Assembly (NCBI GenBank): GCA_033442325.1
Contig: JAWQFM010000017.1
Span: 803,639-867,638, forward strand
Source: Salpingoeca rosetta
Taxonomy: Eukaryota; Protista; Choanoflagellata
Length of the DNA stretch: 64,000 nucleotides
Reading direction: 5' to 3'
The position numbers were made by a program, and so were the translations under genes. The notes under the pieces were generated by a model. That model had not been told where the DNA came from. It saw only the letters and a list, made by a program, of their open reading frames with translations, and did no database searches. Below, in pieces: positions 17,565-23,219 of the stretch (position 1 is its first letter; every line of letters begins with the position of its first letter).

Positions 17565-20500
17565 ATGGCGGATGATGCAGAGATGAGCACGCGCAAAGTG
17601 CAGAAGCACCTCCAGGAGGTGAACCAGGTGCGTCGTCGATCTCTGTGTTGCGTGCTCTGTGTGTGTGTTGCGTGCTCTGTGTGTGTGTGTGTGTGTGTGT
17701 GTGTGTGTGTGTGTGTGTGTTGTGTTGGAGTTGTGTTGGAGTTGATGAGATGAAAGGACGATGCTTGATGGACGTGATGGACGACAGCCAAGATGTGTCT
17801 GCGCTCATGTCTCGTCACACTTGCCCCGTCCCTGGTTGTAGGCCTTTGAGAAGGAGTACCTCTCCAAAGTGCCTCGCGGCAATGTCGTGGAACTGGTGCG
17901 CTCTTATGGTCGACAACAGTGGCGGTGGTGTCGGGGGAGTTTGCACTGGTGTTGGGGCAGGCGACGATGCACATTTTTCACGCTGCACCTTTGTGCTCAG
18001 TAGCTGACTTGATGTCTTGATTTTGTTTGCATACTCTTTGCATGTGTGTGTGTGTGTGCACAGCGCCGCCATCTGAAGAGCATTGCGGAGGAGTTTGCCC
18101 GTGCAGATGCAAACAACTCTGGCGACATTGATCTCAGCGAGGTGTGGCCGGTGCACTCGTCAGCATGCTTCAGTGTAGTAGCGTGGTGGTTTTGTTTTCG
18201 ATCGCATTCTCCTCACACTTGCACATGCTCGCACGCTGTGCATGTGCGTGTGTTCCCCTCGTGTATGCCAGATTGGCGCGTGTTTGAAGGCGCTTGGGCG
18301 GGATCTGCCGCCCGCGTCAATCAAGGCCGCCATTCGCCGCGTGGACGACGACGACTCCGGCACCCTCCGTTACAGAGAGTCAGTTGCCCAAGCGCAAGCG
18401 CGCGCGTGTGTGTGTGTGTGATTGAGGACGGACAACCATCTCATACGGGCGTGCCGTGTGGTGCATTCGCCTGTCCCTGTGTACGTATGCTCATGTGCAT
18501 GTGTGTTTGTGTGCGTGCTTTTCAGGTTCATCAACCTGATTCTTCTCGAGAAGGGCTTCATCTCGGAACCCATTGAAGAGCGCAGCTCTGCACCGGCTGC
18601 AGGCGTACGTACACGATGCACACACACTGTTGTGTGCCTGTGTCTGTGCCTGGGTCGTCTTTTTTTTTTTTTTTTGTACTATTTCCGAGCCAACCTCATT
18701 CCACCCACCACCACCTCCCCTCGAAACCAACACTGCACCCCCACGCTCCATAACAGGGCCTGGGCCGCCGCCGCCACGGAGCGGTGAAGAAGAAGAAGCG
18801 CGGGCATCTCAAGCTCTCCGTCGTCCTCAAGGAGACGCGCGACCACATTGTCCTCGAGGTTGAGGTAGGCTATTGTTGTTGTTGTTGTTGTTGTTGTTGT
18901 TGTTGTTGTTGTTGTTGTTGTTGTTGTTGTTGTTGTTGCTGCTGCTGCTGCTGCTGCTGCCGTTGTTGTTGTTGTTGTACCTTGCATGGTGTGTGAATGT
19001 ATGTGCAAGCGTCGTGCCATTGAGCAACACACCGTCCACATATGAACAGCGCTGACGCCCCTTCCTCTGCTCCTTCCCTGCTGCACAGGTGTATGAGGCC
19101 AAGAACCTGCTGCCGGCCGACCTCAACGGCCTCGCAGACCCATATGTCAAGATGTACGTGCACCCAGACCCCTCCAAGAAGACAAAGCAGAAGACAAAGG
19201 TGCGCAGCATGTGTGTGAGTGTGTCTGTGCGCACGCGCGTGCAAGGTGGGGGCGGCTGCATCTTGCCCTCCTTGGCGTGTTCGTGAGTCGTTACCCAGCC
19301 CTCTGATCTCAACCGTTGCTGTGGCGTGAACATGTGTCGCTGTTAACCACCATGCCAGATTGTCAAGAAGACGCTCAACCCAGTGTGGAACGAGAAGTTC
19401 ACGTGGAAGTTCAGCAAGCACGACGACCTGTGTGCGTAGCGTGTTCTTGCATGCACGGTTGCATGCGAAGTTGTGGCGGAGGAAAATGTGAAACAGTATC
19501 GACAAATGCGTGTGTGTGTGTGTGTGTGTGTGTGTGTGTGTGTGTGTGTGTGTGTGTGTGTGTGTGAAACGCTGCCCCCCCCCATCACCGCCTCAACCAA
19601 CATCGTTCCTCTTATTGTCGACAACTGCAGCGTCCCGCAAGCTGCACGTGGCCGTGTGGGACTGGGACCGCGTCACGCGCAACGATTTCATGGGCGCAAT
19701 GGCGTTCACGGTACGCCTCTTAAACCGCAATGACCGGCACGCTGCCTTGATTCCGTGTGTGTGTGTGTGTCTGTGTGTCTGTGTGTATGTGTGTCTGTGT
19801 GACATTTGAATTTCCTGTGCACTTTTGCTGCCCGGCCCACTGTCTCACATCTCTCCCCTTCCTCCTTCTGCACCACCACCTTCCCCTCATCATCGCCGTG
19901 TTCAGTTCAAGGAGCTGATGGACGAGGACACGGTCAAGTCCAACTGGTTCATTCTGCTCGATGAGGAGCAGGGCGCCACATTCAACTTCCCAGACAGGTG
20001 CGCACCACGTTGCCTGCAGGCAACTGCAAGCTGAAGATCAGTGGGTGAAGAAGCAGGGGTCGGGAATTTGTGCCCTTTGCGTGTCGCGCTTAATACGTGC
20101 GCGCATGTTATCGGCATTCATTGCGCTCACGCCGCCCATGTGCTGTTGATGTTGCTCTGTCCTGCTATTGGAGTGCAGGGTGCCCAAGACGGTGGTCAAG
20201 CGCGGCACCAGTGTGGTGAGTCACCAACCTGTCTGCTTGCTGACGGTGCTGGCGGCCATGACTTGTTTGCTGGTCACCCTATTTTTGTCTGCATTTATTG
20301 TCTCTGTTGCCTGCTCAAGTTGTGTTCGACACCCGCATACACATAATATTCACACTGCATTGGGCCCCTTCTCACTTGCACGCCATCACGAATTGTGTGC
20401 TTGTGTGCACTCCTCCTCCTTCTCTCTATTCCCCTCTTCCCTCCCTCCTCTTCCCCTTGCCTTTGTTCCCTTGCTCCCACATCAGCGGGAAGCAATCAAG

Positions 20501-23219
20501 AAGAACGCTGCGCCGATTGCCAAGTCGAGTGGTGGCAGCATCACCGACTACCACCTCCTCAAGGTCCTCGGTCGCGGGTCGTTTGGAAAGGTCTTCCTTG
20601 CAGAGCGCAAGACAGACAAGAAGGTGCGTGCGTGCGTGCGTATGTCTGGGTCTGTCTGGATCTGCGCGTGTCGGTGCACACGCAATTTCATTCATTTCAT
20701 TCACGCTCAATCTGCCATCCATTTTGCTTCTCCCCCGCCCCCGCCCCTTTTTTTTTTCTCTCGTGTCCACGTCGCTCATGGTATTGCTGCTCATGTTCAT
20801 CTCTGCGTTCAGCTCGTCGCCATCAAAGCGCTGCACAAACTGCGCGTCATTGAGGACGACGACGTCGCAGCCACCATCGTGCGCTCACCTGCGTCATGTG
20901 CACCGTGAATGCTTGTCCCACGCGCCGAGACACACACACACACACACACACACACACACACATGTATGCAGTCACGTGAACGCGTGCACACACAAGTTCC
21001 CGCACAACACATGTACACGTGCACTCGCACGAAACATGCACGCATGCACTCATCCACACGCATGCACTCATCCACACGCACGCACACGTCGTACCCACAT
21101 TGCGCTCTCGCTCGCCCCTTTGGATAGACTGAGCGGACGGTTCTTGGGTATGGCCGCAGCGCGCCGTTCATGATTGAGCTGGTGTGCGCGTTCCAGTCGC
21201 AGTCGAGCCTGTTCTTCGTCATGGGTCTGGTTGCTGGTGGCGACATGATGTTCCACGCCATGCAGCAGGGCAGCTTCTCCGAGAAGGCAACCACCTTTTA
21301 CGCCGCAGAGATTAGGTGGGTGTTTTGGGGAGGGGGGGGGGGTTTCAGGTGTATTTTATATGTGTGTGTGTGTGTGTGTGTGTGTGTGTGTGTGTACGTG
21401 TGTGTGTGTGTATGTGTGTGTGTGTGTGTGTGTGTGTGTGTACGTGTGTGTGTGTGTGTGTGTGAACGTGAGTCCCATTCCACGAATGCATCGCATGAAT
21501 GTGTCACGAATTGCTCAAGATTACACACCTGCACACACACTCTCTCTCTCTCTCACTGTCTCTCTCTCTCTATCACAGCTGTGCGCTGCAGTATCTGCAC
21601 GACAAAGGCATCATCTACCGCGACCTCAAGCTGGACAACGTCATGCTCGACGAGTGAGTTGACGCAATGGCCCGTTATGTCCGGCAAACCCTTCGCGCTG
21701 CCGGTGGTGCTCTTGCCTTTCTGCTTCCTGCCCCAACCAACCTCCTCCCCCCCCCCCCGGCATTACACCCTCAAGCTCGCTCACTCGCCGCCCGTTCCCA
21801 CTCTCTACCACCACAATGTTGACTGACGATCAGGGAGGGCCACGTGCGGCTGGCTGACTTTGGGCTGTGCAAGCTGGGCCTGTCTGAGGGCGAGCGCACA
21901 TCCACGTTCTGCGGCACGCCAAACTACCTGGCGCCGGAGATTGTGACGTACCGGTCGTACGGGAAGGAGGTGGACTGGTGGTCCCTGGGCGTCATCATGT
22001 ACGAGATGATGAATGGCATTGTCCTCTTTGACGGCGACTCGGAACAGGTGCGCTGGGCGGCTAGCGTGTTACTTGATGCACGGTGTTTGATGAGGGGGGC
22101 CAAGAAGAGGGGGAAAGGAGGATGGCTTGGCCAGTGCCTTGGCTGCGCTGAGCTGTAATGAGGATTTTTTTTGGGGGGGGGTGGCCCTTGCCATACATTC
22201 GTCCATGTTTGTATTCACATTGCGTTCACTTCCTTGCATTGCGTTCACCATCATCGCCACCACTACTGTTACGACTTGCTGCCGTTGTGCAGGAGCTGTT
22301 CCGCAACATCCTGCACCAGCCCATCGAGATGACCCGCACCATGAGCCGCGACGCGCGCCAGGTGACACACTCTCGCGCGCACATACGCACGCACGCACAC
22401 GCACACATTCACACGCACGCACACAAAGCCCCTGCTGTTTATACTGCGTCTCGATGTGCCTGGATGTCTGTGTGTTGTTGTGTTGGCGAGTGTGTACCGA
22501 TGTTTGTGTGGCCTCCGTCTTCTTTCGACCACTACCCCTCATTGTCCCCCTTCCCTTCGCTCTTGCTGTTCAGATTGTGTCCAACTTCCTGTGCCGCGTG
22601 CCCAGCCGCCGCCTCGGGTACGGCCCGAGCGCCAAGAGCGATATCCGCGCAGAGCCCTTCTTCAAGGACATCAAGTGGGCCCAGCTCGAGAACCGCGAGA
22701 CACAGCCCCCGTTCAAGCCAAAAGTCAAGGTCTGTGTCTGTGTCTGTGTCTGTGTCTGTGTCTCGTGTGTATGTGTGTGTCTGTGTGCGTGTGTATGTGT
22801 GTGTGTGTGCGCGCGTGTATGCGTCCTGTCTGTGTGTCTGTTGAGTTGCACTCTCCACTCATCCACAGCCCCCTTTCATGTAAAACCACAACCCCCCCCC
22901 CTTCTGCTCCCGATTCCCCTGCACAGAACCCGCGTGACGCCAGCAACTTTGACAGCGAGTTTACGTCTGAGCGCGCCGCTATTACCCCACTCGCAAAGCA
23001 TGAGCTCGATCTCATTGACCAGGTGCGCATGTGTGTGTGTGTTCACACACCCTTGCGTTTTCTGCCTGTTCCCTGTGCCTCGTGATGTTTTCGACATAAT
23101 CACGGTTGTTCTTAACCTCCACCTCTCAACCCACCCCTCCCCTCCCCCCAACCAAACAGGATCTGTTCCGCGGCTTCAGCCTTGCTGAGGAGCCCTCAAT
23201 CAAGCCTGTGCTCGTCTGA
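17565..23219 (+). CDS. Protein kinase C-like AGC kinase: 2x EF-hand, pseudosubstrate, Ca2+-type C2, kinase; no C1 domains
   Basis: EF loops [12 protein letters not shown] and [24 protein letters not shown]2 motifs [19 protein letters not shown] and [13 protein letters not shown]. Kinase motifs [39 protein letters not shown] tail PPFKP, NFD, ITP, FRGFS. TGA at 23217-23219. Confidence 0.93.

Follow-up and report, generated by a model that had tools for sequence, protein, structure and literature searches.

Conventional protein kinase C (PKC) enzymes owe their regulation by diacylglycerol and phorbol esters to a tandem C1A-C1B module, which raises the question of what becomes of such an enzyme when this module is missing. 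A gene of the choanoflagellate Salpingoeca rosetta poses this question directly. It lies on the forward (+) strand of a 64,000-nucleotide stretch of DNA (assembly GCA_033442325.1, contig JAWQFM010000017.1, positions 803,639 to 867,638), which was analyzed as a whole and is called the window below, with all coordinates given as window positions. PKCs are classified in textbooks as conventional, novel or atypical by their combinations of C1, C2 and PB1 domains. We know of no PKC class that has EF-hands, and none were present in the other PKCs compared here. An earlier note on this DNA had read the gene as a PKC that lost both C1 domains and gained an EF-hand pair. We find that the gene joins an EF-hand pair, a pseudosubstrate-like segment, a C2 domain and a PKC kinase domain without any C1 domain, and that the same layout recurs across choanoflagellates. 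The whole explanation that we consider probable is that these genes form a choanoflagellate-specific offshoot of conventional PKC, here named EF-PKC, in which Ca2+ activation would be led by the C2 domain and diacylglycerol would go unsensed.

Domain architecture of the S. rosetta gene

The gene is already present in NCBI and UniProt (S. rosetta XP_004991971.1 / EGD75514.1 / F2UG86), where a 633-residue protein is machine-classified as PKC/Alpha under the name "AGC/PKC/ALPHA protein kinase". Our gene model has 20 coding exons that yield a 641-residue product from an ATG at 17583, with 19 of 19 coding introns being GT-AG and 130-270 nucleotides (nt) in length. It is 97.7% identical to XP_004991971.1 over the alignment including gaps, and the two are identical outside of two gene-model differences. 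The order of the product is an N-terminal helix, two EF-hands, a linker of ~20 residues, a pseudosubstrate, a C2 domain, a hinge, an AGC kinase domain and a PKC C-tail.

The long N-terminal helix (residues 1-24, 17583..17868, in exons 17581-17627 and 17842-17895) is predicted by AlphaFold as a helix of residues 2-27 with a predicted local distance difference test score (pLDDT) of ~93. It leads into the EF-hand pair (residues 30-103, 17884..18550, in exons 17842-17895, 18064-18141, 18272-18378 and 18526-18604), which is recognized by Pfam, by profile comparison and in an AlphaFold2 model. Specifically, EF-hand_7 scores 35.0 bits on XP_004991971.1 against a cut-off of 30, and the family profile matches calmodulin lobes and the regulatory domain of CDPK in the PDB with E=1e-25. 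The AlphaFold2 model of the N-terminal 115 residues (pLDDT 88) consists of the long helix and two EF units, and the Foldseek neighbors of the pair are centrin/Cdc31, EFhd2, EFhd1, calmodulin lobes and the CDPK regulatory domain. EF loop 1 (18106..18141) is an exact match to PROSITE PS00018. EF loop 2 (18344..18526), where intron 18379-18525 splits the Glu codon after its second base, misses this pattern solely at loop position 9, which is an Arg. The pair thus has the ligands at positions 1, 3, 5 and 12 and the Gly at position 6 of a calmodulin-like lobe, and is predicted to bind Ca2+. An origin of the EF module from AIF-1/EFhd proteins was considered and is not supported, as PF21008, which has a cut-off of 50 bits, scores 30.7 on XP_004991971.1 and no more than 39 in any ortholog. 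EFhd2 is one of many equally good Foldseek matches to the pair, and the profile matches in the PDB are generic calmodulin-like ones.

The pseudosubstrate-like segment (residues 125-135, 18766..18798) has a Gly-Ala core with basic flanks and shares its exon with strand 1 of the C2 domain. This single 108-nt exon (18757-18864, 36 residues) runs from the pseudosubstrate-like stretch directly into the first C2 strand, so that only about three residues separate the two. The phospho-acceptor position is occupied by Ala, and the segment reads RKGALKKKKRG in the Monosiga and Choanoeca orthologs, which resembles the RKGALRQK of conventional PKCs. An N-terminal pseudosubstrate of the conventional PKC kind, with Ala at the acceptor site, is therefore predicted for this protein.

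The C2 domain that follows (residues 136-274, 18799..19992, in exons 18757-18864, 19089-19199, 19359-19431, 19631-19710 and 19906-19997) is of the conventional PKC type. Pfam C2 scores 105 bits on XP_004991971.1 (cut-off 22), and the best solved match is the C2 domain of PKCalpha (E=1.2e-38) followed by those of PKCgamma and PKCbeta, all of which come ahead of the synaptotagmins. The alignment to PKCalpha begins already at the KRG motif, which in conventional PKCs follows C1B. Asp168, Asp174, Asp229, Asp231 and Asp237, as well as Lys178, Lys190 and Lys192, are conserved and aligned with their PKCalpha counterparts.

No trace of a C1 domain was found. Regular-expression searches for the C1 motif HX12CX2C...CX2CX4HX2C, in full, core and half forms and in all six frames of the 64-kb window, gave no genuine match. 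The half-motif matches on the + strand are only translated GT/CA microsatellites, and a hidden or split C1 exon was rejected as a candidate for the same reason. The whole 641-residue product contains six Cys, and Pfam C1_1 has no match in XP_004991971.1 or in any family member scanned, while it scores 100-120 bits on the positive controls P0175, P0092 and P0144. The gene also contains no run of N in which a C1 exon could lie. EF-PKC thus does not have the tandem C1A-C1B of a conventional PKC.

The remainder of the protein is that of a typical PKC. The AGC kinase domain (residues 310-569, 20549..22666, in exons 20486-20623 through 22574-22729) scores 214.8 bits with Pfam Pkinase (cut-off 31.7), and the C-tail with its NFD, turn and hydrophobic motifs (22667..23219, with the stop codon at 23217-23219) scores 43.9 bits with Pkinase_C (cut-off 20.9), both on XP_004991971.1. 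The nearest solved relatives of one kinase exon are PKCalpha/betaII, followed by PKN, PKCiota and Akt. Phosphorylation sites, numbered on the 641-residue product, are present at the activation loop (Thr468 in TFCGTP), the turn motif (Thr610 in ITP, 22984-22986) and the hydrophobic motif (Ser629 in FRGFS, 23178-23180). The AGC kinase domain, the PKC C-tail and the activation-loop Thr indicate that the protein belongs to the AGC/PKC family. The features that the earlier note had read from the letters, namely two near-canonical EF loops, the exon fusing pseudosubstrate to C2, the five Ca2+-binding Asp with the KQKTK cluster, the three phosphosites and the missing C1 exon, are thus all borne out.

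One transcript joins the EF-hand, C2 and kinase exons

We addressed whether these exons belong to one gene with RNA-seq reads from two stranded runs. Coverage over 17000-22999 is almost wholly in the orientation of a + strand mRNA, and 13 junctions of the gene model are among those listed from the raw reads, with 24-66 reads each. The junction that matters most, 18604>18757 between the last EF exon and the exon shared by pseudosubstrate and C2, is covered by 49 reads (25+24) and has no rival joint. Consensus sequences of loose read ends add one more junction (22729>22927), the fourteenth, and show five of the listed ones again. The EF-hand exons and the C2/kinase exons, which the earlier note had asked to see joined in cDNA, are thus parts of one transcript.

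Distribution of EF-PKC across choanoflagellates

The first orthologs (P0004, P0139 and P0074) were obtained by searching exon 14 against a library of 1.84 billion representatives, which gave no self match, and then by local BLAST with the spliced model. A profile search followed. In addition, the first 140 residues of an ortholog, used as query in a word-index search of low sensitivity, matched only three proteins. Overall, full-length EF-C2-kinase orthologs were found in 12 further choanoflagellate species from both orders. These proteins have 617-678 residues with colinear EF-hand, C2, Pkinase and Pkinase_C domains and no C1. Carriers include Monosiga brevicollis (XP_001748495.1 / A9V750), Choanoeca perplexa, C. 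flexa, Hartaetosiga balthica, Salpingoeca urceolata (three copies), Mylnosiga fluctuans, Savillea parva, Diaphanoeca grandis, Didymoeca costata and, with decayed EF loops, S. kvevrii. About ten environmental sequences also have this layout and are nested inside the family in the tree. No animal, filasterean or fungal protein with this layout was among the matches listed. Most of the orthologs are complete open reading frames (ORFs) from independent transcriptome assemblies, which excludes a fusion artefact.

Conservation was counted over 23 aligned family sequences. The catalytic Lys, the HRD Asp, the DFG Asp and the activation-loop Thr are conserved in 23 of 23 members, the EF-loop ligand positions and the five C2 Asp each in 22-23, and the Gly-Ala of the pseudosubstrate in 21-22. 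For EF loop 1 the ligands are kept in 22-23 members, and the pattern of loop 2, DDD[DN][ST]GT[LI]R.RE, is kept in 22, Arg at position 9 included. The turn-motif Thr/Ser is found in 22 members, and the G.I.EP segment directly following EF2 is nearly invariant. The hydrophobic-motif site is a D or E in five of the 23 members.

In a maximum-likelihood (ML) tree of kinase domains the EF-PKC family forms one clade (support 98/96). Its main split separates Acanthoecida from Craspedida in agreement with the species groups, with some forks inside Craspedida being unsettled. The architecture is therefore no younger than the most recent common ancestor of the choanoflagellates sampled. Taken together, EF-PKC is an ancient choanoflagellate family and not a peculiarity of one gene.

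Proposed regulation

The domain order suggests how such an enzyme would work. In the resting state the pseudosubstrate would block the active site. A rise in Ca2+ would load the C2 domain, whose five Asp are intact, and the loaded C2 would dock on anionic lipid or phosphatidylinositol 4,5-bisphosphate through its Lys cluster. With both its Ca2+-binding site and its lysine cluster intact, this C2 is expected to dock on anionic membranes in a Ca2+-dependent manner. Docking would then pull the neighboring polybasic pseudosubstrate out of the kinase cleft and onto the membrane. Given that this segment lies three residues from C2 strand 1, docking of C2 alone may be sufficient to open the kinase. 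Without C1, the enzyme would be insensitive to diacylglycerol and phorbol ester, a prediction that follows from the absence of any known site for either ligand. Insensitivity to these ligands and activation by Ca2+ are well-founded inferences from the conserved domains.

The least certain step concerns the EF pair, which would bind Ca2+ and could then provide either a second, cooperative step in pseudosubstrate release or localization. Any role of the pair in releasing autoinhibition is speculative. One possibility, to which we give somewhat better than one chance in three, is that EF-PKC is a dual-Ca2+ detector in which the EF pair acts as a Ca2+-operated latch that cooperates with docking of C2 on the membrane, so that the choanoflagellate "conventional PKC" would be uncoupled from diacylglycerol.

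Several observations weigh against the explanation that we favor or against parts of it. The Ca2+ affinity of EF loop 2 is uncertain because of the Arg at loop position 9. In the full-length AlphaFold model the domains each fold confidently (mean pLDDT 89.6), but neither the pseudosubstrate nor the EF pair is confidently docked to the kinase (predicted template modelling score 0.56), and pLDDT is 46-72 at residues 121-140, which comprise linker and pseudosubstrate. Because the interdomain arrangement is not confident, we offer the latch as a conjecture. The S. kvevrii ortholog (P0176), which sits on a long branch, has lost the canonical ligands in both EF loops (QDPNKRGFLDLDQ and DPHRSGELHYWN) and retains pseudosubstrate, C2 and kinase, so the EF pair may be dispensable for core regulation. 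In regards to descent, the free ML tree weakly places the EF clade outside of the group of animal conventional and novel PKCs and not as sister to conventional PKCs. Finally, five of the 19 coding junctions rest on GT-AG ends, reading frame and colinearity with orthologs, and not on listed reads; some junctions have no listed reads because reads beside masked intron microsatellites are cut.

The decayed loops of S. kvevrii also bear on the alternative that survives best, in which the EF pair stands outside the autoinhibitory switch and is a Ca2+-dependent or constitutive module for targeting, scaffolding or dimerization (for example for the cytoskeleton, the collar or the flagellum), with C2 and pseudosubstrate alone governing activity. 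This would fit an ortholog that keeps its C2, pseudosubstrate and kinase despite degenerate EF loops. It would also fit the nearest folds of the pair, which include centrin/Cdc31 and the actin-binding EFhd2/EFhd1, the sub-threshold Pfam AIF-1 matches in many members (30-39 bits against the cut-off of 50), and the disordered linker of ~20 residues between EF pair and pseudosubstrate. Against it, the near invariance of the EF ligands and of the post-EF2 segment is no less compatible with an intramolecular role, and every member has the EF pair in the same place, directly ahead of the pseudosubstrate. We regard a module of this kind as unlikely on balance.

Origin of the family

The pseudosubstrate, the type and position of the C2 domain, the KRG linker and the similarity of the kinase all point to descent of EF-PKC from a C1-bearing gene of the conventional PKC kind. 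Parsimony favors loss of the C1 pair from such an ancestor, since C1 is present in all other PKC classes compared. Under this reading an internal deletion of C1A-C1B would have fused the pseudosubstrate to the linker between C1B and C2 (KRGH/R), and the EF module would have been added at the N-terminus before the choanoflagellate radiation. Thus, of the loss and gain that the earlier note had proposed, the presence of the EF pair and the absence of C1 stand as observed, while the history is read from comparison and the tree leaves the sister group unsettled. The kinase phylogeny that the note had suggested gives a similarly divided answer. It recovers the family as one clade and does not settle a sister relation to animal conventional PKCs, as monophyly of EF-PKC with conventional PKCs is not rejected by an approximately unbiased (AU) test (p=0.283).

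The alternative here is that the family never had C1 and was put together independently from an AGC kinase, a synaptotagmin/PKC-like C2 and EF-hands, branching before or beside the C1-bearing PKCs. The free ML tree leans this way in that it places the EF clade as sister to a group of the S. urceolata conventional PKC, novel PKCs and animal conventional PKCs, with weak support (78/96 and 64/60). Against this stand the AU test, which leaves a clade of EF-PKC and conventional PKCs unrejected, and the C2 domain, which matches PKCalpha over any synaptotagmin with an alignment that reaches into the C1B-C2 linker KRG. The pseudosubstrate resembles that of conventional PKCs, the C2 occupies the conventional PKC position between regulatory region and kinase, and all other sampled PKC classes carry C1. 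We therefore consider an origin without C1 to be improbable.

The S. urceolata protein in this tree (P0175, EukProt EP00051_P006007) is the only choanoflagellate-labelled protein that we saw with a C1-C1-C2-kinase layout. It is 56-57% identical to animal conventional PKCs, falls outside the animal conventional PKC clade and has only environmental sequences as close relatives. When it was used as query, the best 120 matches were animal and environmental sequences only, with no S. rosetta paralog among them. This protein may be a surviving paralog of the ancestral type or a contaminant.

Comparison with known kinases

EF-PKC is homologous to the conventional PKCs (alpha, beta and gamma), although it lacks the C1 domains that define them, and is predicted to work most like one of these minus the diacylglycerol input. 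The two share an R-x-G-A-(L/V)-basic pseudosubstrate, a five-Asp C2 with a KQKTK-type cluster before the kinase, and an AGC kinase that has the activation-loop Thr along with the NFD, turn and hydrophobic motifs. They differ in that EF-PKC is without the C1A-C1B module, has an N-terminal helix and EF pair instead, and has its pseudosubstrate abutting C2.

Calcium-dependent kinases of the CDPK/CPK type (plants and apicomplexans) and CCaMK also carry EF-hands in cis with a Ser/Thr kinase beside an autoinhibitory segment, and the family profile matches the Arabidopsis CDPK regulatory apparatus 2aao. In contrast to EF-PKC, which is an AGC kinase with two N-terminal EF-hands, CDPKs are CAMK-group kinases with four EF-hands C-terminal to the kinase and junction and no C2. 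EF-PKC is thus not a member of the CDPK/CCaMK group. The earlier note had called the arrangement convergent with CDPK logic. What holds of this is the presence of EF-hands in cis near an autoinhibitory segment, and the likeness is an analogy only because kinase group, EF number and EF position differ.

Two further comparisons are with PKC relatives that do not respond to diacylglycerol and with a lipid kinase. Atypical PKC and PKN/PRK, which are such relatives, have an acidic residue at the hydrophobic-motif position, as do several EF-PKC members. Unlike EF-PKC, atypical PKC does not depend on Ca2+ and combines a PB1 domain with a single atypical C1, and PKN carries HR1 repeats together with a C2-like domain. 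EF-hands and a Ca2+-competent C2 are absent from both. Type I diacylglycerol kinase alpha is likewise a lipid-signalling enzyme with an N-terminal EF pair, and differs in that it is a lipid kinase which keeps its C1 domains and has no C2 and no pseudosubstrate. The EF-hands of this enzyme are reported to hold on to its C1 domains until Ca2+ breaks the contact (PMC4050180).

Gene model and surroundings of the locus

The weakest alternative, that the architecture is a gene-model artefact with EF exons from a separate upstream gene or with a missed C1 exon, could appeal to the five junctions without listed reads and to the two places at which the annotated model differs from ours, but is already effectively refuted, and in our judgment very nearly without remaining probability, by the 49-read junction that lacks a rival, by the same colinear layout in complete transcriptome ORFs or gene models of 12 other species, by the absence of both a Cys/His motif in any frame and an assembly gap in the gene, and by coding introns that are 130-270 nt long and rich in microsatellites.

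The two differences from XP_004991971.1 concern the start and the hinge. The annotated protein uses another first exon (MSE-, 17255-17261), and RNA coverage over 17200-17399 is near zero. In our model the 3' part of a non-coding first exon of the 5' untranslated region (UTR; 17000..17063, with a donor GT at 17064) is joined to exon 2 (17581..17627) by the RNA joint 17063>17581 (9+15 reads). Exon 2 contains the likely start ATG at 17583 (MSTRKVQ...), and the orthologs start within ~10 residues of this position. The earlier note had placed the start at ATG 17565. This position has to be given up, since the RNA joint puts it inside a 517-nt intron of the 5' UTR and the first exonic in-frame ATG is therefore 17583. 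An upstream extension of the ORF was also rejected: the frame is open to 16544, its only ATG (16583) leads into low-complexity Leu/Thr sequence, and the orthologs start near 17583. The second difference is a 37-nt micro-exon of the hinge (20179..20215), which the annotated protein skips, reading RCAP-PIKK. Its downstream junction 20215>20486 has 34 reads (11+23). A corrected gene model, with a new start codon and the hinge micro-exon, is thus a by-product of this analysis.

The region of 17000-23262 is GC-rich, with short exons and microsatellite-filled introns. Long microsatellites, either (GT)n/(CA)n or (GTT)n/(GCT)n, lie in many introns and upstream of the gene at 17412-17477, 17640-17725, 18868-18975, 19510-19566, 20940-20962, 21365-21465 and 22735-22815. 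The assembly gaps nearest to the gene are 10590-10689 and 23263-24072, none being inside it. The second, of 810 N, begins 43 bases past the stop codon, so that the 3' UTR and the polyadenylation site are absent from the assembly.

At 21614-21873, many reads and high-depth contigs agree with the gene solely over the conserved YRDLK...DFG stretches and differ in the intervening letters, which produces pseudo-joints at 21631/21635/21648>21849/21856. These are transcripts of other, higher-expressed AGC kinase paralogs and not isoforms of the EF-PKC gene. Two contig sets (X4 and X6) over the gene likewise consist only of fragments and paralog pieces. Approximately 1.2 kb upstream of the first supported EF-PKC exon, a Cys-rich ORF starts at ~15843 and runs downwards on the minus strand. 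It is probably a divergently transcribed neighbor.

Implications

A full-text literature search, outside the scope of which the Monosiga kinome paper fell, found no description of a choanoflagellate PKC with EF-hands in place of C1. A comparative survey scored "PKC alpha/beta/gamma" as present in Monosiga (PMC2824662), and an ion pair between C1A and the tail was reported as "not seen" in choanoflagellates (PMC10586763). A statement in PMC7104321 conflicts with the Monosiga EF-PKC ortholog XP_001748495.1.

The existence of a C1-less, EF-hand-bearing relative of conventional PKC across choanoflagellates alters the reconstruction of the ancestral animal toolkit for Ca2+ and lipid signalling. EF-PKC is also a natural system for asking what C1 domains contribute to the autoinhibition and activation of PKC. 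S. rosetta is transfectable and CRISPR-editable, so the predicted translocation and activity, driven by Ca2+ and blind to phorbol 12-myristate 13-acetate, are directly testable. If the latch reading is true, the coincidence detector for Ca2+ (through C2) and diacylglycerol (through C1) would have been rewired long ago to dual-Ca2+ sensing in the closest living relatives of animals. EF-PKC would then be a conserved natural experiment, indicating that a soluble Ca2+ sensor can replace the C1 step of PKC activation.

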